A DNA stretch of 63,001 bases, filler included, from Ministeria vibrans ATCC 50519 (Eukaryota > Protista > Filasterea), in assembly GCA_943704425.1 (NCBI GenBank). It is 6 parts of 6 records of this genome, joined end to end, with 100 filler letters (N's around TTAATTAATTAA, not from the genome) between each part and the next. Parts side by side here need not be neighbours in the genome. Positions count along the whole stretch, not along the records: positions 47,608 to 60,564 come from CALSCP010001193.1; 5 more parts are not named here. One strand, written 5' to 3'. The notes beneath the pieces were generated by a model. The model was not told where the DNA came from and made no database searches. It was given only the letters and a program-made list of their open reading frames with translations. Positions 47,420 through 60,564 of the stretch are shown here, piece by piece; position 1 is the stretch's first letter, and every line of letters begins with the position of its first letter. A program made the translations under genes and the position numbers.

Positions 47420-47790
47420 CTACAATACGAAATACAGCATACAATGAATCAAAGGGTAAAACCCTTTATATTTTTTCCTGTCACTTTTTTTTCTCTCTCA
47501 CGCGTTTNNNNNNNNNNNNNNNNNNNNNNNNNNNNNNNNNNNNNNNNNNNNTTAATTAATTAANNNNNNNNNNNNNNNNNNNNNNNNNNNNNNNNNNNNN
47601 NNNNNNNGCAACTCAATGACAACTGGTCGAGTAACTACCAAGTCAACTCCCCTTATCCTTCCTCCATCCCCACCAGACTGTGCGTCTCTGCGCTGCTCTT
47701 TTGTCGCATCGTTGCCAATCTGATCCGCCTCCGTTTTTTTTTTTTTTTTTTTTTTTTTTTTTGTGGTCAACTCATTTTTTTCTTTTTTAG

Positions 47791-49526
47791 ATTACCGCCG
47801 GCAACGAAGACATACCCACGTCTGAAGTGACCAATAACCGAGCGACGCTGGTGGGCGGCCAAGCCGTATTTCAGTCCATTCGCTTTGTCAGTCGCAGCAC
47901 TTCTCGGTATATATATAATTAAACACAAGCAACAGTCCGCTCAACTCTTCGCTGTCTCTTTGCGCACAGTGGCGGACGAGGCAAACGCTTTGACATCACC
48001 ATCACAATCAACTCGTCGCCTCCCATCGTGGCAAAGGTTGTCGATGTCATTAAGATTACGGCGGACGGGCCGCGCGAGCCACGCTACTCACGCTACAAAC
48101 ACTCGGATGTGCCTTCCGGCTATGGACACGGCCATGGCGGAGGCGGCGGCGGCGGCGGCAGCGGCGGCAGCGGCTCGGGGAATGCGTCAGGCTCAATGCC
48201 GGGACTTCGTTCGGCGTCGGGATCGGGACGTCGAGCCAAGTACACTGATCCGTCATATCCATGGCGCAGGTCGGGACGCAAGCGACGTGTCGACGACGAC
48301 GAAGATGACCTTGACGAGGACTTTGACGAGGACTTTGACGACGACGATCCACCCGTTCCGGTCAGCAAGAGACGCTCTACGCCCAACAAACGAGCAGCGA
48401 CGGAGAAGACAAAGTCACCAGCCACACGCAGTGGTGGTGGTGGTGGTGGTGGTGGTGGCAGTGGCGGCGGTGGTGGCGAGGCTGCTTCTGTTACCAACAT
48501 TGCTGCCACGAACGCCGCCCTTGTGCCCGGCGTATACCCATCCCAGTTGATCTCTCACCAAATGCAACAGCCGCCACTTATGCAGGTTCCCGATCCGCTC
48601 TATCTGCCGCAGCAGCTTCAACAGCAGCAGCACCAACAGCAGCAGCACCAACAGCAGCAACAGCGAAGTCCTTTGCGTATGCGTGCAGCCCACTACATGG
48701 CCCTTGCCGACGCCTCGTTTAACACTCTACTCACCGTGTGCGGGCAAGTCGTGCAACAGGCAGACCGCACAGCCCAGGAGCTCCAAGAGTTCCAGAATGC
48801 CGTCGAACTGGCTGTGTCGTCTGAGCCGGCATTCTTTGACGAGAGCCAAGGGACCGACATGCTGCCGCTCAGCGAGTGTGTGGCTGTCTGCGAAGACATG
48901 AAACCGCATGTGGACAGCATCCAGGTGCAGGTGCGCAAGGCCATGGACCTCACGCACCATCTGTTCTTGTCCTTCCGCTCCATTGGCGACATGTTTGGCA
49001 TGCAAGCGCACGTCAATGGCAATCCCGCGTCCGCCAACAACCTTGCTGCGTCCAGTCGTACGGGCACCAACACTGGCGGTACTGGCGGCACAACAAGCAG
49101 CACCAATCCCGGCGGTGGTCCGCCTCTCATGCTTCGCTCCTCTCTGAGCACCGCCCTCATGGGAATGCCCATCTTCCAGCCCACCGATGTGAACCCGTAC
49201 TCGCTGGGCAACTCCCTCTCCTTTTCAACCACCTCCCTTCCTCGTGTTCCCAGTGCCTCTCTCATGTCTCTTCCCCCAGACGTCAATCCAAACCCTACCG
49301 TCACCGTCACCAACTCCTCCTCCTCCAACAACACTCCCACTATCAATGGCGCTCAGTCGCTCCGTCTCGAAGTGCCTCATCAGGTGCTCAACCAGCGCTC
49401 CTCTGCTACCTCAATGGCCCTTCCCTCGCAGCAGTACCAGCAATACCAGCAACAACAACAGAAGCAGCAACAACAACAGCAACAGCAACAACAACAACAG
49501 CAGCATCAGAGCCAACAACACCATCA

Positions 49527-49557
<31 letters not shown>

Positions 49558-50958
49558 CAGTCTGCCTTTCAACAACAACCCTACCAACCGCGTTTCCCCC
49601 CTCCTCCTCAGCAACAAGCCCAGTTTCAAATGCCACCTCAGCATCAACACCAACATCACCAACAACAATCACAACAACAACAATCACAACAGCAACAATC
49701 ACAACAGCAACAGCAACAGCAACAACAACAACAACAACAGCAGCAGCAGCAGCAGCAGCAGCGTCAGCGGCAACCATCCACAGACTCGCCGTCTATTCCA
49801 GGCTCTCCACCCACCAAAACAGAGCTTCCCGCTGACGCCACCACCGCAGGCATTTCTCTCCCCGTTGCTAGCATTGTTCTCCCCGCCACCGACGTTGCCT
49901 CTGCCGCCGACTCGGCCACGACTTTGCCTCTTGCCACTCTTGCTGCCGCCACCATTGTCGACCCAACGTCACCTCAGGTCTCCGAAATGGGCGAACGCCA
50001 TCTGCACTCCGCCGTTCTTCTTAAGCCCTCATCTGATGCCCCTCAGTGGCTCAGACTCACCGGGTTTTCCGCCTACGATGACAATGACGATGTTAGTTTG
50101 CGCAACATAGCAATATACACTCATACTCACACACATACTTACTTTTTATAGATGTGCCCACTGGAGCGCATTGTCGAGGGCCACTACGTCTACTTACGCG
50201 GTCTTGTCATTCAGGTGCGCAGCTCGGATACAAATCTACAGCCTGTACTTCTCGAGACTCAACCAAGCTCTTTTGTTTTTTCTTAGGATTCCAATGTGTC
50301 AACTTCACGTGGAGTGCGCACGAAACTGTCGCGCGTGCTCAAACTCACCGTGGGCCAAGACCAGCACTTAAAGTACACAATCGGCTTGGTTTTTGGTGGT
50401 TTGACTGATTCGGTTTCTCTTATTAGACCCTGTCTGTGGGCACAAACACAGTACGGTGTGTACCGACTTGAACTGGCAACACCCGCATTCCAACTGGTGC
50501 ACAACGAGCAGCGCGTCATTGCACTGCTACAGAAGGCAGCGAGTGGAGACGGGACGGACGTCGCTGTGCAACAACATGCATACCCGGCTGAAACAGTGGA
50601 GGGGGATGTGCCAGTTTTGCGTGTGTCATCGCCGGCGACTGATACAAGTCTCACTGCTGCTGCCCCTGTGAATGGTACTGTGGGTGAGGGGGGTGCGCCA
50701 CCCAGTGAGCCCATTGCTGCCACGATAACCACTGCCACCACCACCACTACTAGTGGCTCCCCTACAACTGCAGCGTCTTCGCAATTTGTTCCGCCGACGA
50801 TGACCTCTGTCGTGCGCCATGCGACCGATCTTGCCTTTCGTGAGGCGCGACTGCTGCCACGCAAGAAACGTCTCGAGTCGGAAACCACGGAGGCCGACCC
50901 GAGGATTATCGGTGGTATTCCCTGCACCCCTGATCTCATGGATGTTCCCGAGGAGTAA
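47791..50958 (+). CDS. RUNX: Runt-domain (Runx) transcription factor fused to a C-terminal DNMT1-RFTS/RFD-like domain (5' end in gap)
   Basis: Exons 47791-47906, 47970-50091, 50152-50214, 50287-50372, 50427-50958. Runt: ITAGNED..NNRA...AVFQSIRFVSRS..GRGKRFDITITI..PP.VA....IKITADGPREPR. Confidence 0.9.
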
Positions 50959-51029
50959 AATTTGTATTCTTTCACGTCATTTAAGAAAAATAATATTGAT
51001 ATTTTTAGAGAATAGACGATTAAGAAAAA

Positions 51030-51250
51030 TAATAAAAAGAGAATCAAGAGCTGTACTCAATGTCAAAACAAGACAATATACAAAGCAAAGAGCAGCACAA
51101 TACTTCCGCCGTAGACTTCAAGACGAGAATGTCCCGAAAAAGGCCAAGACCCACTGAAGGCACAGGTTAATAATAATAATATTAATAATAATAGGAAAAT
51201 AAAGAGAATCGAGAGCTGTACTCAATGTCAAAGCAAAACTAATATAATTA
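51030..51250 (+). repeat. Dispersed intergenic repeat, copy 2 (51035-51156) and truncated copy 3 (51193-51245)
   Basis: agagctgtactcaatgtcaaa occurs twice; the first copy continues gagcagcacaatacttccgccgtagacttc.agacgagaatgtccc. Confidence 0.88.
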
Positions 51251-51417
51251 TATTAATAATAATATAATAATTTATTATTGTTTTTTATTATTGTTAGTTA
51301 TTATTATTATTATTAATAATTTAATTTTGCTTCTGCCTATTCGCTTCCCTGAGTTACCTCAAAATCCTCATTCCTCAAACGCCAAACAATACTCTTTTTT
51401 GCGACTGTGATCCTGAC

Positions 51418-54400
51418 ATGCAATCTCTTGAGACGGAACACCGTCACTTGGGTACTCTTGTCGACGAGATCAATCGACGAGTCAGACAGCACGAATGGCC
51501 CGGCGACGAGTGGCAATGCCGCAAATGCGCTCACAAAAATCCATCGACGGCTCAGCGTTGCGCTCGTTGCCGTCTCGCCTCAAACGCCTTTCTCTGTCGC
51601 GTGTGCACACTGCCACGTGGCGCTCCCATCCAGTGTCCCGTGTGCGACACTCCAGCGGACGCGAGCGACTTTGCTACGGGCGCAACTTTGCCACTGCGCG
51701 TCCGAGAGCTCGTCGAGCGTGCTCACGCCGAGTACGATCGACTCACGGCGCTCCTTCGCTCAACAAGTCCGCCCGACGCCTCTACCATTGCGGACCTCAC
51801 CTGTGCACTTCGCGCCGATCTCGACGAGCTCGTTCCCAGCGACAAGACGCCCAACGTCGCAAATCAACAAACGTCGTCGCGTGCGTCCCTCGCCAGAACT
51901 CCGTCATCGGCCGCTGCAGCAACCTCGGCGCCATCAAGTACAATGGCTCGTTCTTCTGAGACCCTCTTGGACGCTGAGGCGGCCCGCGTCGTGCGTGTTG
52001 ACGAGCTGCAGCGTCGTTTCCTCGACGAGCTTCCTTCAGGTCACTTTGCAGGCACCATTGCTCGTCTGCGCGACGTCATGCTGCCCATCGACGACTTCCT
52101 GGCCTGGTTCACCAGCATTTTTAGCATTCCCGAGGCGCAGCAAGCTGCCTTCCGACGCAGCCTTGCCTCGACGGCAGTGTCGGCGGCGTCAAGCGGTGTG
52201 AGTGCGCGCCTGCAAGCAAGCGTCAAGCTCATGCTCAAAGGTGGTCACTATGCAGGCTATGAGCGTCTGCAGGCCATTGCTGACGAAGGAGCCGTGCCAG
52301 TCGATGTTCGCACCGACGCGAAGATCCTTGCGGGAGCCTGTCGCATTGCGTTGGGCGACGTACAGGACGCGGCAGGGGTGCGCGAAGCGGCACAGAACCC
52401 CCTTGCAAACACTGCCATTGCCAACTATGCGCTTATGTTGCTAGAGAAGGGTCTTGGCAACAACATGAGTGCTTGTGGCCATGCTGTTGCCTTTCTCATG
52501 GCGTGCATCACGGGCGAGTGGCCGCAGTGGGAGGACGACGCGCACGAGCTTGTCGAGCAGTGCGCTGCGAGTGTTGTTGAACATGCACGCGCCGCGACGG
52601 CGCGTGCCCCCGCAACTGCCGCAGGCGCAGCAACAGGGTCCGCGGCAGAGGCAGGCAGTAGTGCAAACATCACGTCCGCCGCCGCCACCACCGCCACCAC
52701 CAGTACCAATAGTGCCCAAGAGGCGCGCTGGTCGAGCATTCAGTCGTGTGCGTCGTCACAAGCAGAGCTCACGGCGCTGTGCCGTCTCATGTCCATGACA
52801 GGACTGGCCAACATCAAAGACCGTCTCATGGACATCTTTGAGCGCGTACAGATTCAACGCGAACAGGGCATTGGGTTTGACGACGTGTTCTTTCACGCAC
52901 GATTTGAAGGGAATCCAGGTGGGGCAACGAGTGAAATTATCCAATCTTTTAATTCTGTTGTGTGTGTCGTTGTGTTGTGTTTTTTTATTTTATTTTTTTA
53001 TATAGGCACTGGAAAGACTACCGTTGCGCGGATTTATGCAGACTTTCTGAAAGAGGTTGGGATTCTACCGGGCGCAGCAGTGGAGATGACGACAGGAGCC
53101 AAATTGCGAGGAGGCGGAGAGAAGGCACTGAAGGAGCACTTGAAGAAGATTGAGAGTGCTGGCGGTGGAATCCTGTTTGTCGATGAAGCGTACCAGCTGG
53201 TGCCACACAGTGGCGGGGGAGGGCAGGAAGACGCACCCGAGCTGGACCGACTGTTGACGGAGATGGAAGACTGTAAAGGCAAGATGGTGGTTGTCCTGGC
53301 GGGCTATGTCAGCGACATGGAGTCTCTTTTCAACTACAATCCCGGTTTGCCGTCACGTTTCCCGTACAACTTTCACGTAACACACAAAAAAAAAACACCA
53401 ACAGCTTTTTATTTTCATCTTGCTAATGGCTTTGTATAGTTTGCGGACTATAGCGACGAAGAGCTGCTGAGCATGCTGAAAGGTCGACTTAGGGTAGGTG
53501 GCAAGACGTTTCGGTTTGCGGACGAGCGACACGCGCGTATTGCGATCCGACGGATTGCACAGGCGCGGGGCACGCCGGGCTTTGGCAATGGGCGGGCAGT
53601 GCGGAACCTGTTGCAGCGGGCGCAGGACCGACAGGCTGCGCGAATTGCGCTTGAGAAGCGCAATGGAGCACAGTCGTATGACATTATGGTGTTTGAGCGT
53701 GACGATGTGTTGGGTGCGAGGGTAAGCAAGGCCGACATGCTCGCCAGCTCGACCGCTTATCAGGAACTGCAGCGCATGGAGGGCCTCGACTCGGTCAAGG
53801 AGGCTGTCGACAATCTCATCGATCTTGTCGCTCTTAATGCTGATCTTGAAGAGCGCGAAGAGCCCCTGCAACAGGTCAGTCTTAACCGTTTGTTTCTGGG
53901 CAATCCCGGCACAGGTAAGGAAAGTTTTTTTTTCGTTTTTTTTTGTTTTTTGTTGTTGTTTTGATTTCGGGTATTGCAGGTAAAACGACGGTGGCACAGT
54001 TGTATGGGGGCATTTTGCGTGACGTTGGACTGTTGAGCAACGGTGAGGTGGTGATGAAGAAGGCATCGGACTTTGTGGGGACTGTGATTGGGGCGTCGGC
54101 TGATCAGACGCGTAAGATTGTGGAAGGAGCAATGGGAAAGGTGTTGGTGATAGACGAAGCGCACACGTTGTACAGTGGCGGGTCGGGTGTGGGACTGGCG
54201 GGCAAGAATGATCCGTTCAAGGATGACGTCATTGACACGATGGTAGAACGTGTGCGAGGGGTGCCTGGCGAAGATCGTGCGGTGTTGCTTGTGGGACTGC
54301 GCGCCAACACGGAGCGAATGCTCGAGGCGGTGAATCCGGGCCTCAAGCAGCGCTTTGACTTGCGCAACGCCTTCATCTTTGACGACTACAACAACGACGC

Positions 54401-56109
54401 GCTTTTTCGCATTCTGTCCAATCGAGCTCAAGAGGAAGGGCTCCAACTGGACTTTGCGGCGAAACAAGCGGCAATTGCGCACTTGGCACAGGAACGCAAG
54501 TTGCCCAACTTTGGCAATGCGACCGCCGTGGCAAATCTGTTGTCGCGTGCCAAGACGCGCATGCGTGGCCGTGCACGGGCACTGCAAACCGCATCGTCTT
54601 CGACACCCGTCTCGATGATTGCCGAGGATTTTGCCAATGCGGATGCGGCCGAGAGTGAGGCAGCAGATGCGCAGCGACGCGACGCGGCGGATTTGTTGAG
54701 TGACGAAGTGGTGGCGCACCTGACCAAGCTGCGGGGCGGCATTGCCATGGCTAAGAAGAAGGGACTGTCGATTGCCGAGGCGACCGGTAGTCTTGGCTAT
54801 CGGTTTGTGGGCAGTCCGGGCACCGGCAAGACAACGGTGGCGCGTCAGATGGGACGCGAGTTGTACGCGGCAGGTGCCATCGCGAGCAACGATGTGTTTG
54901 TCGAGGTGACCGCCAAGGACTTGCTGACAGGCTATGCGCAACAGGCGGCTATCAAAACGGAGGAGACGTTCAGTCGTGCCCTGGGCGGAGTGTTGTTCAT
55001 CGACGAGGCGTATGCGCTGATTCCCCACAAGGAGGTGGTAGACGCACTGGTGCAGGCACTGACGCTGCCTAAGTTTCACGGGAACATGGCGGTGATTCTG
55101 GCGGGCTACGAGACCGACATGGCTGCCCTGCTGCGCATCAATTCGGGTCTGGACAGCCGTGTGCCTACGGTGGTGCGCTTTCCCGACTGGAGCAGCGAGA
55201 AGGCTTCGAAGGTGTTTACGTCGCTGATGCAGTCGCGTTTTGACGTGCGTCTGGGTGTTGAGGCAGAGACGGCATTGCCGCGCGTGATGGACGAGCTTAT
55301 TCGTGCGCCCGCTTGGGCTAACGGACGCGACGTGGTCGAGTATGCGCGACACGTCTTCCAGAGCTACGGAGTGCGTACGATGGAGGAGCCGTCGTCAAGT
55401 GATCTTTTGAGCGAATCGGATCTGCGTGAGCCACTGCGCGAGATAATTGCGACCAAACTGGCTACGGGCGATGCGACATCGAGTGCGGTGGAGCGAGCGG
55501 CACTGCTGCCGCCCATTGTGCCACTCCCGTCTGAGTCGGCGAATCAGGTGGAGGTACCGCAAGTGGCGTTGACCGATGCCAATGCGGCCGAGGTGGGAGG
55601 CGGAGGAGGTGAAGGAGATGATGAAGGGGAAGGGGCCATGGCTGTGGAACAGGAAGGGGCTCGCGTGTGGCCGTTGAATCTAACTGCGGATCGGGATGCG
55701 CCCGCCTTCACGTTTGACTCAAAGGAAGAGGAGCAGGCAGTGAACGATGCACTGGATGCCATGCAACTGAAGGGACCAGGGGCACGCGAGCGAGTGGAGC
55801 GGATCATGGGCGAAGGCGACGACGGTGAGCTGACAGGCGAGATGGTGGACGGACTTGCGGGACGTCTTAGTGGTGACGGGGCATCTGCACGTGCCGCTAT
55901 GATTGTCAAGCGCTGGAAGAAGTCGGTCATAGCCAGTACCACTGATATCACCGACTATGCCAAAGGTACAACACATACATTGTGAAGTAGAGAGACTTGG
56001 AGATATAGAGGAGGGAGAAAAAAGAAAAAGTAAAGTGATATAGAGGGAGGGGAGGGAGAAAGGAACAAAGTGATATAGAAGGAATGTATATGTGTGTGAC
56101 TGAAAAAAA

Positions 56110-56141
<32 letters not shown>

Positions 56142-56275
56142 TAGACAATCAAGTGCAGATTGTCGCCCAGAGACTACGACCGGTGTATCGGTGTCACGGG
56201 TGCGATGCGCTGTCGAACGAATGGGCTCCATGCTGGTACAAACCCTACCTGTGGAAGTACGAACCGGTTCCCTGA
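51418..56275 (+). CDS. RanBP2-type zinc finger + helical region + three tandem CbbX/SpoVK-type AAA+ domains
   Basis: WQCRKCAHKN..CARC; three Walker A (GNPGTGKT x2, GSPGTGKT) and Walker B (DEAYQL, DEAHTL, DEAYAL); NPGL.SRF; FGNGRAVRN; 4 GT-AG introns. Confidence 0.9.
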
Positions 56276-56350
56276 ACGAGGGTTAATAAGAGAATGATAC
56301 AGAATATTATTGTCTCTTTTTGGTTCGAGTGCGTTGGCGATAATTTCATA

Positions 56351-58471
56351 TTACAACCAATCATGATCGAGGCAAAGAGGACAGACAGCATAGACACGAG
56401 CATCGTGGACAAACTGAGAGTCTTGCTTGGCTGCAGCAGAGGGATCAGCGACCGCCTTGAGGACAGTACCGGTGCCGTGGCCCCAAGGGCAGGCGAGGGC
56501 GCGCGGATGGACTACGTCAGCGAGTGCCGTCTTGCGAAAGGTTGTGTCGGCAAGAATGGCGCCCGTGAGGATGGCACGCGTGAAATCGGTGCCGTAGAAG
56601 CGACACCCGGTAAGGTTTGCGTGTGAGAGGTCACGGCCAACAAGTGACGCGCGCGAGAGGTCCTGACCCGTAAGATTCGTGCGTACCAACGCGCGAGGCA
56701 TTCGCGTCCAGTCAATTTTAGAGGCGAGAAACGACGCGCCCTCGACAATCGCTTTGGACATGTTTGCGTCGCGGAGGTTTGCGCCGTCAAAGCACGCCTG
56801 AGACGCATCCGTTTTGTACAGGCTTGCATTCGCAAGGTTGCACTTGACAAAGCTAGCGCCACGCATGTCCTTGCTGGACAGGTCGACGCGCGAGAGATCG
56901 TGGCCGTCGAGCACAACGGCGGGAAGTGCACGGGGCATGCGGCTCCACTCCAGTGAGGCACCCACGAGAACCGCACGGGACAGGTCGCGCTCGGCCAGGT
57001 CGGCACATGTGAGGTCAAGGCCTGACAGGTTGACGCCGGCAAGAGCAGTGGGCATGTGAGCCCAGTCGATGTGTGCGCCCACGAGAGAGACATCTGTCAG
57101 GGTGGCACTGCCAAGCTGTGCCTCGCTCAGGTCAGCATGGTCCAGCTTGGCACCCGTCAGGTTGGTCGTGACACAGTGTGCTCGCGTGAGTGTGGCGCCA
57201 CGTAGGTCTGCATTGACGAGCGACACACCGTCGAGCGTGGCGTCGGTGAGATCAGCGCCGCGCAGGTCAGCGCCGTCGAGGCATGCGTCGGTAAGGTTGA
57301 CGCCACTGAGACGTGCACCGTTGAGATTGCATGGAAGTCCTTTGTACGACAGATCGATGCCCATCAGATGACAACCACGCAAGTCCATGCCGACAAGTGC
57401 CACGCGTTGGTTGGCGCACTGGAATCGTGCAATGAGGTTGAGCAGTTCGAGTTGGGACTGACAGGCGAGACCGACGGGGCGAGACAACTCGAAGGAGGTG
57501 GAGTCATCGGTAATGGCAGTGACTGTTGCGGCTGTTGACGGTAGTGATGCTGGTACAATGGGAGCAGTGGGTTGGGCGAGAAGTGCGTCGACGAGACGAT
57601 CGAGGTCAAGGAGACGCGCCGTCGCCAGAAGTTCGTTGTACGTGTCGATGCTGAGCGACGTAGGCACCACGTCCGTGCGGAGCCAGGCGACGATGAGGGG
57701 GAAGTGGGCAATGTCAAGAGAGAGCGGCGCGCCGTCCGTGTGGTCCTGAGCGATGAGAGCCAGCACAGAGTCGGGCTCCTTAAGGAGCGTCGCTTTGGAG
57801 ACGACGAAGTTGCGACCGTCGCAGCAAATGGTGATGCCGCTGCAGAGGTGCTGACACAGGGCGAGACGCGACTCGCGACGGGCGGCATATGCTTCGCGAC
57901 GCTGCCGTTCTTCGGCGGCGCGCCGTTCGCGCTCCTCTTGGGCAGCGCGGGCGGCACGCGCTTGGATTGCATCGGGACACTTTTCAAGATGGGCTGGCAG
58001 ATCGCGACGCGGCACGCTCGTCTGGCAATCGGGGCATTGGGAGGGGGCAAAGTCGCATGCGTCACTGGCATGCTTCAGCGCATCGCTGCTGGACGCGACA
58101 AAGTTGCAGCCGGCACGGCGATGGCGGCAGGGGACGTGGGCGCAGTCGCGGTCGACGTGCGTAAACAACTGCTCGCGGACACCCGCCCACGCGCAGCCCG
58201 TCTTGCGGTTGCGGCAAAACACTGTGACAGACTCACTGAGCAGGTCTTTGAGCGTCTCGTCGACGTCGCGGATGTCCGTGGCGGGGTTCACAGCGACGGC
58301 GCAGACGGGACATGTTTTGGAGGCGCGAAGGTGGTGAGCGAGGCAGAAGGCACAAAACTTGTGTTTGCAGGAGAGCCGTCGGGGTTCCCACAGCGGCTCT
58401 TTGCACGTGCCACACAGGATGAGGGTGCTCAGAGACTCAACAGACACGTACTCGAAGCATTCCTTTTCCAT
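56351..58471 (-). CDS. Intronless RING + TRAF-type zinc fingers + KCTD-type BTB + pentapeptide-repeat protein
   Basis: CGTCKEPL..CKHKFCAFC..CPVC; CRN..GCAW..H..C; ITICCDGRNFVVSKATLLKEPDSVLA..F.LIVAWLR; long A(D/N)Lxx repeats. Confidence 0.9.
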   Translation of the reverse strand: MEKECFEYVSVESLSTLILCGTCKEPLWEPRRLSCKHKFCAFCLAHHLRASKTCPVCAVAVNPATDIRDVDETLKDLLSESVTVFCRNRKTGCAWAGVREQLFTHVDRDCAHVPCRHRRAGCNFVASSSDALKHASDACDFAPSQCPDCQTSVPRRDLPAHLEKCPDAIQARAARAAQEERERRAAEERQRREAYAARRESRLALCQHLCSGITICCDGRNFVVSKATLLKEPDSVLALIAQDHTDGAPLSLDIAHFPLIVAWLRTDVVPTSLSIDTYNELLATARLLDLDRLVDALLAQPTAPIVPASLPSTAATVTAITDDSTSFELSRPVGLACQSQLELLNLIARFQCANQRVALVGMDLRGCHLMGIDLSYKGLPCNLNGARLSGVNLTDACLDGADLRGADLTDATLDGVSLVNADLRGATLTRAHCVTTNLTGAKLDHADLSEAQLGSATLTDVSLVGAHIDWAHMPTALAGVNLSGLDLTCADLAERDLSRAVLVGASLEWSRMPRALPAVVLDGHDLSRVDLSSKDMRGASFVKCNLANASLYKTDASQACFDGANLRDANMSKAIVEGASFLASKIDWTRMPRALVRTNLTGQDLSRASLVGRDLSHANLTGCRFYGTDFTRAILTGAILADTTFRKTALADVVHPRALACPWGHGTGTVLKAVADPSAAAKQDSQFVHDARVYAVCPLCLDHDWL

Positions 58472-58644
58472 TATTGTGGTAATGAAGTGAGTAAATTATA
58501 TGAGTTTAGAGCACAAGTTTGTGATCCAGTTGGCAGTTTCAAATCACTGTTTGACAGACTGTAGCCTAAATACCGAGATGATTTAAAAGCAAAAAGAGAA
58601 CTGGACAGTGAGTGGACACTGTCACTGCTTGAAAATTGTGAATA

Positions 58645-58752
58645 TAGGAAAATAAATACAGAGCTGTACTCAATGTCAAAACAAAACTATATACAAAACA
58701 AAGAGCAGCACAATACTTCCGCCGTAGACTTCTAGACGAGAATGTCCAAAAT
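58645..58752 (+). repeat. Dispersed intergenic repeat, copy 4
   Basis: aggaaaataaa..agagctgtactcaatgtcaaaacaaaactatatacaaaacaaagagcagcacaatacttccgccgtagacttctagacgagaatgtcc. Confidence 0.88.
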
Positions 58753-58880
58753 GGGAATGTATTTTTCATTTCGTTCTGAGTTGGGAGTAAATGGCGCATT
58801 TGATCTGACTAAGAAGCTGCATGACGAGTTTGACTATGCAGAACACATTCTACGTGATCTACACGCCAAACTGGAGATAA

Positions 58881-58915
<35 letters not shown>

Positions 58916-59179
58916 TGGAGCACATAGCGCGCAACTCTTATACATGTTGTGTTTCACTTACGATCAGTTGCACTATGTCGTTCAGGCGCTGTTCAGAGAG
59001 CATCCCGCTGTGGCAAGTTCCGTGAGGACGTTCTTCCAGAACACAAAATGAAAATGAGATAACAATTGCGTGATGTGTGCCACAAAGTGACGGGAACCGC
59101 ACAGTTCATATTTTTAATTCGTTTCGTGCCACTAAGGCTTCAACGTAAACAGGGGTTTCAAATATATTATGTGACATTA

Positions 59180-60564
59180 TTAAAGAATAATACAGGTTGA
59201 TGTGTCGGTTGAAGGTGACGACTGAAGTGTCGAAAGTGCACGTGTGATAGCTTTGTTCCGTGGGTGTGAAGCGGGGAGTTTTGATTCGTATGTGCGCTTT
59301 GCTCGTTCAAAGAACGTACGAGCCTTAGGGGTGTCGCCTTGTGATCGGTGAAGATACCCAATATTTTCATATGTTTCGGCTGTGGACGGGTGGTCGGGAC
59401 CAACAGACTTCTCACAGATGGTCAGAGCACGCTCATAGTACTCAAGAGCACGACTGTAGTCTCCTTGTGCCCGAAACACAATGGCCATGTTGTTCAATGT
59501 CTGGCCTGTGGATGGGTGGTCGGGACCAACAGACTTCTCACGGATGGTCAGAGCACGCTCATAGTACTCAAGAGCACGACTGTAGTCTCCTTGTGCCTGG
59601 AACACACCAGCCATGTTGTTCAATGTGTCGCCTGTGGATGGGTGGTCGGGACCAACAGACTTCTCCTTAATGGTCAGAGCACGCTCATAGTACTCAAGAG
59701 CACGACTGTAGTCTCCTTGTGCCCGAAACACAATGGCCATGTTGTTCAATGTGTCGCCTGTGGATGGGTGGTCGGGACCAACAGACTTCTCACGGATGGT
59801 CAGAGCACGCTCATAGTACTCAAGAGCACGACTGTAGTCTCCTTGTGAATGGAACACAAGAGCCATGTTGTTCAATGTGTCGCCTGTGGATGGGTGGTCG
59901 GGACCAACAGACTTCTCCTTGATGGTCAGAGCACGCTCATAGTACTCAAGAGCACGACTGTAGTCTCCTTGTGCCCGAAACACAATGGCCATGTTGTTCA
60001 ATGTCTGGCCTGTGGATGGGTGCTCGGGACCAACAGACTTCTCCTTAATGGTCAGAGCACGCTCATAGTACTCAACAGCACGAGAGTACTGCCCCTGGTC
60101 GTCCAATACACTCGCCATCGTATGAAACGAATCCGCTGCAACCACAGACTCCTCATCTCCAACACACGCCATTCCCATCTCAATCCCTCGCATCGCCTCA
60201 TCAAACCTCCCATTCACTCCCCACAGCACCGACAGCCGTATTCCAAGCCTCACCACCTCATCATTTTTCCTTCCCTTCTTTACCATCCGCTCCAAACACT
60301 TCATCCCATGCACTCCAACCTCTCGACACCACTCCATCCCAGAGTATATCTTCTCCTCCTTATCAATCTCTTTCCGCAACGCCATTCCCACACGCATCAA
60401 TTCCTTCCACCGCTCCTCCTCATCATCAAACCCGGTCGCCCGACACACATCCTGCACCAGCTCGTGCACACTCACGCGTGTCCCTCCCCTCTTCAAAACA
60501 GACAGTCGACACAGAAACAAAAGCGCCACATCAAACTCATCCTCCTCTGCTCCCTCCTCTTCTT
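59180..60564 (-). CDS. NPHP3/kinesin-light-chain-type TPR array protein, probable NB-ARC-TPR C-terminus, ending in CaaX (CIIL); 5' part in gap
   Basis: SVHELVQDVCR winged-helix-like motif; 42-aa repeats GPDHPSTGxTLNNMA.VF..QGDYSRALEYYERALTI; terminal CIIL*. Confidence 0.85.
59380..60095 (-). repeat. 126-bp near-identical coding tandem repeats (about 5.5 units)
   Basis: Repeated gtcagagcacgctcatagtactcaagagcacgactgtagtctcc at 126-bp spacing. Confidence 0.95.

Follow-up and report, generated by a model that had tools for sequence, protein, structure and literature searches.

Runx proteins are developmental transcription factors whose origin predates animals. Animal Runx proteins carry a RunxI region and a terminal Groucho-binding motif, VWRPY. 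Runx genes have also been reported outside the animals, in Capsaspora, a filasterean (PMC4877666, PMC3753549). A second described system that bears on the present locus is the RFTS domain, which is found in DNMT1 and also occurs outside DNA methyltransferases; in Schizosaccharomyces pombe Raf2, the RFTS is required for Cul4 binding (PMC4121317).

The locus described here, at positions 47791-50958 on the plus strand, comprises the 3' two-thirds of a gene for a Runx-family transcription factor in the filasterean Ministeria vibrans. Positions are counted along the window, that is, the entire 63,001-nucleotide stretch of DNA that was analyzed. Like animal RUNX1-3 and Drosophila Runt and Lozenge, the encoded protein has a Runt domain with the C-terminal DNA-contact loop GPREPR, and, as in animal Runx, a long low-complexity region of the activation type follows this domain. 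Unlike animal Runx, the protein yields no match to RunxI (PF08504) and lacks a terminal VWRPY, its C-terminus being ...DLMDVPEE. It differs from animal Runx also in its predicted helical hairpin, in poly-Q tracts of great length, and in a beta-rich module of about 105 residues near the C-terminus. The favored reading, to which we assign a probability of roughly 0.6, is that of a Runx gene carrying an orphan, folded-looking, beta-rich module at its C-terminal end.

Gene structure and the Runt domain

This part of the gene consists of five exons, the last of which includes the stop codon, preceded by the end of an upstream intron. Features are listed below with the evidence on which each was assigned.

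47608..47790, + strand, terminal part of the upstream intron (T(32) tract, AG acceptor; the three frames closed or poly-F)
47791..47906, + strand, exon 1, middle of the Runt domain, ITAGNEDIPTSEV...FVSRSTS, then the split codon CG/T
47907..47969, + strand, intron 1, 63 nt, GT..AG, phase 2 (inferred from splice signals and from Runt HMM coordinates that are contiguous across it)
47970..50091, + strand, exon 2, a single open frame of 707 codons; after the Runt end, Gly-rich runs and then a basic/acidic stretch, RKRRVDDDEDDLDEDFDEDFDDDD...KRRSTPNKR (translation)
48670..49014, + strand, predicted antiparallel two-helix hairpin, about 50 residues per helix (AlphaFold2, single sequence)
49465..49761, + strand, main poly-Q/H tracts, exon 2 residues 499-597 (translation, composition)
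50011..50091, + strand, C-terminal module part 1, AVLLKPSSDAPQWLRLTGFSAYDDNDD (translation)
50092..50151, + strand, intron 2, 60 nt, GT..AG, final in-frame TAG (RNA junction 50091>50152 in runs X1, X5, and X6)
50152..50214, + strand, exon 3, C-terminal module part 2, MCPLERIVEGHYVYLRGLVIQ (translation, RNA contigs)
50215..50286, + strand, intron 3, 72 nt, GT..AG, final in-frame TAG (RNA junction in X1 and X5)
50287..50372, + strand, exon 4, C-terminal module part 3, DSNVSTSRGVRTKLSRVLKLTVGQDQHLK, last codon AA/A (translation, RNA contigs)
50373..50426, + strand, intron 4, 54 nt, GT..AG, in frame and open (RNA junction 50372>50427 in X1, X5, and X6)
50427..50958, + strand, exon 5, coding part (stop TAA at 50956-50958)
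50427..50545, + strand, C-terminal module part 4, PCLWAQTQYGVYRLELATPAFQLVH, then helix NEQRVIALLQKAAS (translation, low-confidence model)
50546..50958, + strand, low-complexity Thr/Ala/Pro-rich tail with a short basic stretch, LLPRKKRLE (translation)
50959..50990, + strand, short 3' UTR (poly(A) addition site at about 50990)

Upstream of exon 1, positions 47608-47790 are non-coding in all three frames, and positions 1-54 of the Runt profile, together with the protein N-terminus, belong to exons further upstream. Exon 1 was ended at 47906 because a donor GT occupies 47907-8 and the split codon is completed at 47970. The long second exon begins with the residues GGRGKRFDITITINSSPPIVAKVVDVIKITADGPREPR and finishes with PQWLRLTGFSAYDDNDD. 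An initial annotation of this DNA had described positions 47970-50091 as one uninterrupted exon from the Runt end through poly-Q; translation bears this out with a single frame, and all of the peptides that the annotation quoted were recovered in the frames assigned to them. Intron 4 is both open and in frame, and for this reason a gene caller took 50296-50958 as a single unspliced ORF (P0002, locus L001), the source of which is a single 1.3-kb Logan DNA contig.

Exons 1 and 2 together encode the C-terminal 73 residues of the Runt domain, corresponding to positions 55-127 of Pfam PF00853. Exon 1 matches profile positions 55-91 (E 2.5e-5, 24.3 bits) and is colinear with the match in exon 2, where 47970..48084 covers positions 91-127 with 35.2 bits, above the curated cut-off of 27 bits. 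The latter segment also matches 17 RUNX1, RUNX2, and CBF-alpha chain sequences in the PDB (best E 2.5e-10, RUNX1 chain 2j6w_A). It contains the DNA-contact loop IKITADGPREPR, which agrees with the C-terminal loop consensus IKITxDGPREPR and whose GPREPR is identical in alignment to RUNX1 chains 2j6w_A and 3wtu_A. The profile and chain matches uphold the earlier identification of a Runx gene, and the Runt domain would be expected to bind the Runx DNA motif.

Transcripts of the C-terminal exons

Exactly the three GT..AG introns predicted downstream of exon 2 (50092-50151, 50215-50286, and 50373-50426) are removed in RNA contigs from three runs that derive from separate studies. Runs X1 and X5 each contain all three junctions and X6 contains two of them, as expected from the canonical splicing that had been proposed past exon 2. 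A contig from DNA run X19 has the unspliced form, without the 50091>50152 junction. The intron 3 junction is given as 50212>50285 in X1, and moving the cut by +2 places it at 50214>50287; in X5 this junction is accompanied by a synonymous G>A at 50214. At the 3' end, record 1 of the X1 contig stops at 50990 and is followed by 19 A. Given these junctions and the poly(A) tail, the C-terminal module of about 105 residues is part of the spliced message. Transcripts that end or splice away before the C-terminal exons, which would have spoken against the initial annotation, were looked for in the RNA contigs and did not occur. The spliced RNA contigs span exon 2 from about 49735 onward and are interrupted in the CAG repeats around that position; that the Runt exons and the module are physically continuous is supported by the open frame of exon 2, not by one sequenced molecule.

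The C-terminal module and its possible relatives

The module occupies approximately 50011-50545 and is cut by three introns across four exons (the end of exon 2 and exons 3-5). Compared with the low-complexity flanks, the stretch 49951-50091, exons 3 and 4, and the first 40 residues of exon 5 have higher sequence complexity and a higher hydrophobic content. Within the module the sequence is non-repetitive, with 30-44% hydrophobic residues in an alternation typical of beta strands; part 4 is the segment of the last exon that is greatest in both hydrophobicity and complexity. A single-sequence AlphaFold model of exons 4-5, with the intron retained, has four strands and a helix at low confidence (pLDDT 54.5); it covers exons 4-5 only, so that a third of the module is absent from the input, and it is too poor for fold comparison. 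The module ends with a short helix (50503-50544), beyond which lies the low-complexity Thr/Ala/Pro-rich tail. Its position suggests that the module may fold into a surface on which a co-regulator docks; it would then stand where animal Runx has RunxI and the Groucho-binding VWRPY. As a discrete C-terminal unit present in mRNA, it offers a handle on how a pre-metazoan Runx without VWRPY/Groucho recruits co-regulators.

The module was searched exon piece by exon piece, in lengths of 21-47 residues that are too short for significance. A Pfam scan of these pieces and of the 223- and 88-residue frames of exons 4-5, with E up to 10, gave neither PF12047 nor any other family in the module pieces. With phmmer against the PDB, the four module pieces retrieved no DNMT1 chain, and part 2 (50152..50214) had no match at all. 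No RFD cluster appeared among the ESM Atlas look-alikes of the pieces; those that did appear were weak clusters of beta-propeller type, sharing few features and at chance level. Because the pieces were short and were searched unjoined, these blanks carry little weight either way as regards RFD. Among 1.84 billion (1.84e9) protein representatives, phmmer with the exon 4-5 frame detected no relative except the locus's own unspliced ORF, P0002, and a word-indexed search of 5.8e9 clusters gave the same blank, with that ORF as its sole hit. A JGI metagenome scan with this frame returned nothing, and no intermediate homologue bridging the module to known RFD proteins emerged from the phmmer, word-indexed, or metagenome searches. 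Foldseek with the pLDDT 54.5 model of exons 4-5 yielded no match with E <=0.001; DNMT1 was not among the matches listed, and the low-confidence matches were meaningless. The module is thus without a detectable relative, and no argument from conservation can be made.

As for the family of the module, the strongest candidate is a beta module resembling the RFD (RFTS N-lobe), although none of the tests carried out lent it support. True though divergent homology of the module to the DNMT1-RFD or RFTS beta-lobe (N-lobe; PF12047), as in S. pombe Raf2, is tentative, and we place the odds somewhat against it. Reading the module directly against the DNMT1 sequence suggests three colinear blocks: L-T-x-F-S-x-Y-x5-C-P-[LI]-[ED] across the exon 2/3 junction; hydrophobic-x-G; and, in exons 4-5, G-V-x-x-K ... 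T-x4-Y-x-L-x4-P-x-[FY]. A hand BLOSUM62 estimate gives about 40 raw, or about 21 bits, for the first ungapped block, but with only one pair of proteins compared this already corresponds to an E of order 1, and the resemblance was chosen after the fact. The exons concerned are included in RNA contigs, and RFTS domains outside methyltransferases exist (PMC4121317); if its module were an RFD, the Runx protein would resemble Raf2 in this respect. In comparison with the RFTS of DNMT1, the likeness consists only of this apparent motif resemblance and the beta-rich character, whereas the differences are several. No HMM match was obtained on the pieces searched, and no PF12047, DNMT1 chain, or RFD cluster was found for any of them, in searches of low power; the exon 4-5 frame likewise has no bridging homologue. 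The zinc-binding Cys/His motif typical of the RFTS start is absent, the whole segment having two Cys and no CxxC, in agreement with the initial annotation, which had noted that the Zn ligands are not conserved. The helical C-lobe that follows the barrel is also absent: the sequence past about 50545 is of low complexity and leaves no space for a helical lobe of about 100 residues. The module has about 105 residues and the RFTS about 250. A literature search found no Runx protein described with RFD/RFTS architecture, and to our knowledge no such protein is known.

An alternative is that the tail is not an autonomous domain, with exons 3-5 being lineage-specific and fast-evolving, bearing at most short linear motifs, and resembling RFD by chance. 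We consider this unlikely. It is consistent with the lack of homologues for the exon 4-5 frame in representatives, clusters, and metagenomes, the lack of a family match, the poor AlphaFold confidence for exons 4-5, and the dominance of low-complexity sequence in the surrounding protein. Yet the segment itself has normal complexity, its hydrophobic content and alternation are those expected of beta strands, and three short introns are precisely removed from it with the frame kept; moreover, AlphaFold run on a single sequence often does poorly even with real domains, and part of this module was missing from its input. The ease with which chance resemblance arises is illustrated by an approximately 10-bit match to an unrelated designed protein, which was the basis of a beta-trefoil lead. 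In the PDB phmmer search, the exon 2 tail (50011..50091) matched 3q7y, a designed beta-trefoil (E 4.7e-4), and 4qks (E 7.4e-3), but the E-value for the trefoil is a single 22-residue match summed over three identical design repeats, with i-Evalues of 15 to 220. No internal repeat was found between module pieces (BLASTP, E up to 100), no Pfam trefoil family matched them, and trefoils are usually longer than about 105 residues. This lead was rejected as highly improbable.

The consequences of the orphan-module reading depend on the family to which the module belongs. Were it an RFD, the Runx factor would be linked to a ubiquitin, chromatin, or cullin-ligase partner, and a docking module of the DNMT1/Raf2 type, for chromatin or for a ubiquitin ligase, would replace the Groucho-binding end in a unicellular relative of animals. 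Such a protein would tie a factor with sequence-specific binding to an adaptor of the heterochromatin or ubiquitin type and would widen the known range of RFD architectures. The idea of a ubiquitin or chromatin reader with Groucho-independent repression depends wholly on the putative RFD homology. If the module is not an RFD, the gene is of a known kind except for its orphan domain, and is mainly of concern to specialists in holozoan gene regulation.

The region between the Runt domain and the module

Past the basic/acidic stretch, which may serve as a nuclear localization signal, exon 2 encodes in order the helical hairpin, Ser/Thr/Pro-rich tracts, poly-Q/H tracts, and the first strand region of the C-terminal module. 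The hairpin was modeled by AlphaFold2 from a single sequence with a pLDDT of 77.3 in one of five models. Compared by Foldseek, the model matched generic coiled-coil hairpins only (best E 0.13), which assigns it to no family, and exon 2 residues 222-420 returned no homologues when used as a query. The entire 707-residue exon 2 as a homology query produced poly-Q noise only, and an exact look-up of a neighboring 706-residue ORF gave no record. The poly-Q tracts (exon 2 contains 118 Q in total) and the helical hairpin may contribute to activation or self-association. With introns of 54-72 nt, 55% G+C, and regulators rich in poly-Q, the genome resembles that of a unicellular relative of animals.

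The Runx gene and its exons

The Runx gene of Ministeria vibrans lies on the + strand. The piece of the window considered here (47608-60564) begins within an intron bearing a T(32) tract, and between 47608 and 47790 all three frames are closed or encode poly-F; the N-terminal half of the Runt domain is beyond the piece edge. The five exons read from the sequence (2919 coding bases in total) are as follows:

47791-47906, +, exon 1
47970-50091, +, exon 2 (a single open frame of 707 codons)
50152-50214, +, exon 3
50287-50372, +, exon 4
50427-50958, +, exon 5, with the stop TAA at 50956-50958

These boundaries agree with the initial annotation except at the end of exon 1, which is corrected to 47906 (donor GT at 47907-8); the codon split between exons 1 and 2 (CG, then T) is completed at 47970. 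All peptides quoted in that annotation are found in the frames it named. The locus and genome are characterized by short introns, 55% G+C, and poly-Q-rich regulators, and the Runx locus sequence recurs in sequencing runs from ten studies; together these traits point to a unicellular relative of animals kept in culture.

Judged by its sequence, the Runx identity of the gene is real. Exon 1 matches positions 55-91 of the Pfam Runt profile (PF00853; E 2.5e-5), and the profile carries on directly, at positions 91-127, where exon 2 begins (E 1.1e-8; 35.2 bits against a cut-off of 27). A search of solved structures with the 50 residues that open exon 2 finds 17 RUNX1/RUNX2/CBF-alpha chain sequences (best E 2.5e-10), and the DNA-contact loop IKITxDGPREPR is conserved. 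Runx has previously been reported from Capsaspora (PMC4877666, PMC3753549), and a Runx gene as such is probably not new. In contrast to animal Runx proteins, this protein lacks a VWRPY terminus and ends in ...DLMDVPEE; RunxI (PF08504) has no Pfam match in the Runx exons.

Past the Runt domain, exon 2 encodes, in order, Gly-rich runs, a basic/acidic stretch resembling a nuclear localization signal that adjoins an acidic patch, the segment 48670-49014, a Ser/Thr/Pro-rich region, and about 100 residues of poly-Q/H. The 48670-49014 segment (+; about 115 residues of normal complexity) belongs to no family, and its homologue search was empty. One of five AlphaFold2 models predicts an antiparallel two-helix hairpin (pLDDT 77), whose Foldseek matches are generic coiled-coil hairpins only. 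In the last 30-45 residues of exon 2, complexity and hydrophobic content climb again.

Transcript evidence for the C-terminal exons

Contigs from three putative RNA runs of three studies (X1, X5, and X6) and from a DNA run (X19) were placed on 49780-51100, with the CAG-repeat tract excluded; none of the contigs was judged to be human. The RNA contigs omit exactly 50092-50151, 50215-50286, and 50373-50426 (each GT..AG), whereas the X19 contig is colinear with the genome. All three junctions occur within one contig in X1 and likewise in X5, and X6 has the first and third; the three introns predicted in the initial annotation are thus confirmed. The X1 contig terminates at 50990, followed by 19 A. 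Together, the junctions and poly(A) place the C-terminal exons in a polyadenylated message along with the last part of exon 2. The RNA contigs stop in CAG repeats near 49735, and continuity from the Runt exons to the C-terminal module rests on the uninterrupted 2.1-kb frame rather than on one sequenced molecule. The gene is shown to encode a protein with a Runt domain, and at the end of its mRNA lies a module that is compact, strand-prone, and free of repeats.

Between runs, single-base differences are seen at 50214 (a synonymous G>A in X5) and, in the low-complexity tail, at 50650 (C>G) and 50652 (C>T) in one X6 contig of depth 3.5; these may be strain variants or errors.

Nature of the C-terminal module

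Once spliced, the module comprises roughly 105 residues over four exons (~50011 to ~50545). The initial annotation took it for a DNMT1-type RFTS. An in-frame TAG closes both intron 2 and intron 3, so that no unspliced query spans more than exons 4-5, which are readable through an open 54-nt intron; the module was searched exon by exon. At E up to 10, Pfam gave no match for the tail of exon 2, for exons 3, 4, and 5 singly, or for the exon 4-5 frames of 223 and 88 residues. DNMT1 is absent from the phmmer matches of four pieces against all PDB chain sequences. Against 1.84 billion representatives, the sole phmmer match of the exon 4-5 frame is the same unspliced ORF in a 1.3-kb Logan DNA contig; a word-indexed search again found only that ORF, and a JGI metagenome scan found nothing. 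ESM Atlas neighbors of the module pieces are beta-propeller-like, at chance level only. The AlphaFold2 model of exons 4-5 has four strands and a helix (pLDDT 54.5, with no alignment and with 18 intron-encoded residues included), and its Foldseek matches are meaningless. Such blanks say little either way: at 21-47 residues the pieces are too short for any match to be significant, and weak matches are hidden by HMMER filters. Literature searches returned no description of a Runx C-terminal module and, as far as they reach, the confirmed module is undescribed.

The module is probably a folded docking unit, its family left general (probability about 0.6). That it is not an autonomous domain at all is unlikely. 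A true homologue of the DNMT1 RFD (PF12047) would be a more specific case of the docking unit, and is less likely than not. In its favor, the module appears to resemble DNMT1 in three colinear blocks, yet the best ungapped block reaches only ~21 bits (a hand estimate, about E = 1 for one protein pair, and picked post hoc). RFTS domains do exist beyond methyltransferases, as in Raf2, whose RFTS is required for Cul4 interaction (PMC4121317). The initial annotation names plant EDM2 as another such protein. In contrast to a DNMT1-type RFTS, which has a Cys/His zinc motif and a helical C-lobe, the Runx module has neither. As the annotation had recognized, the zinc ligands are not conserved (two Cys in all, no CxxC, no Cys/His zinc motif), and there is no room for the C-lobe, only one short helix before a low-complexity Thr/Ala/Pro-rich tail. 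The module is therefore at most RFD-barrel-like, not a full RFTS. Interest in it would rise if an RFD were confirmed.

A beta-trefoil was rejected. The exon 2 tail (49996-50079, +) matches the designed proteins 3q7y (E 4.7e-4) and 4qks (E 7.4e-3), but these values are artefactual: the design carries three identical repeats, and a single ~10-bit match is added up across them. No internal repeat exists between the module pieces. This match indicates how easily chance yields resemblances like the DNMT1 block.

In the mechanism proposed for the docking unit, the Runt domain would bind DNA, the basic stretches would drive nuclear import, and poly-Q with the predicted helical hairpin might serve activation or self-association. 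The module would then offer a co-regulator docking surface in the position held by RunxI/VWRPY in animal Runx.

Neighboring features in the window

A repeat whose core is GAGCTGTACTCAATGTCAAAAC is dispersed over the sites 51021-51134, 51186-51239, and 58634-58747, the first copy beginning ~30 nt past the Runx poly(A) site. Two copies have 93 nt in common at 94% identity. Summed word depth in X19 reaches ~171,000 over the repeat versus ~400 for the adjoining unique gene, which puts the genome's copy number in the hundreds; the repeat is present in RNA contigs as well. Three further coding regions follow:

51418-55985, +, RanBP2-type zinc ribbon, then several AAA+ modules (AAA, AAA_lid_6)
56351-58471, -, RING finger, TRAF/Sina-type zinc finger, and long pentapeptide-repeat array in a single 706-residue ORF
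59245-60174, -, TPR_12/TPR_10 (kinesin-light-chain/NPHP3-type) array of 126-nt units

The first is a large gene or ORF pair with at least one intron between ORFs near 53440-53940. The second has an architecture unusual for a eukaryotic E3-like protein, and its exact product is absent from the gene-position index. In the third, the central TPR units are 92-95% identical in DNA, which suggests recent unit duplication or homogenization.
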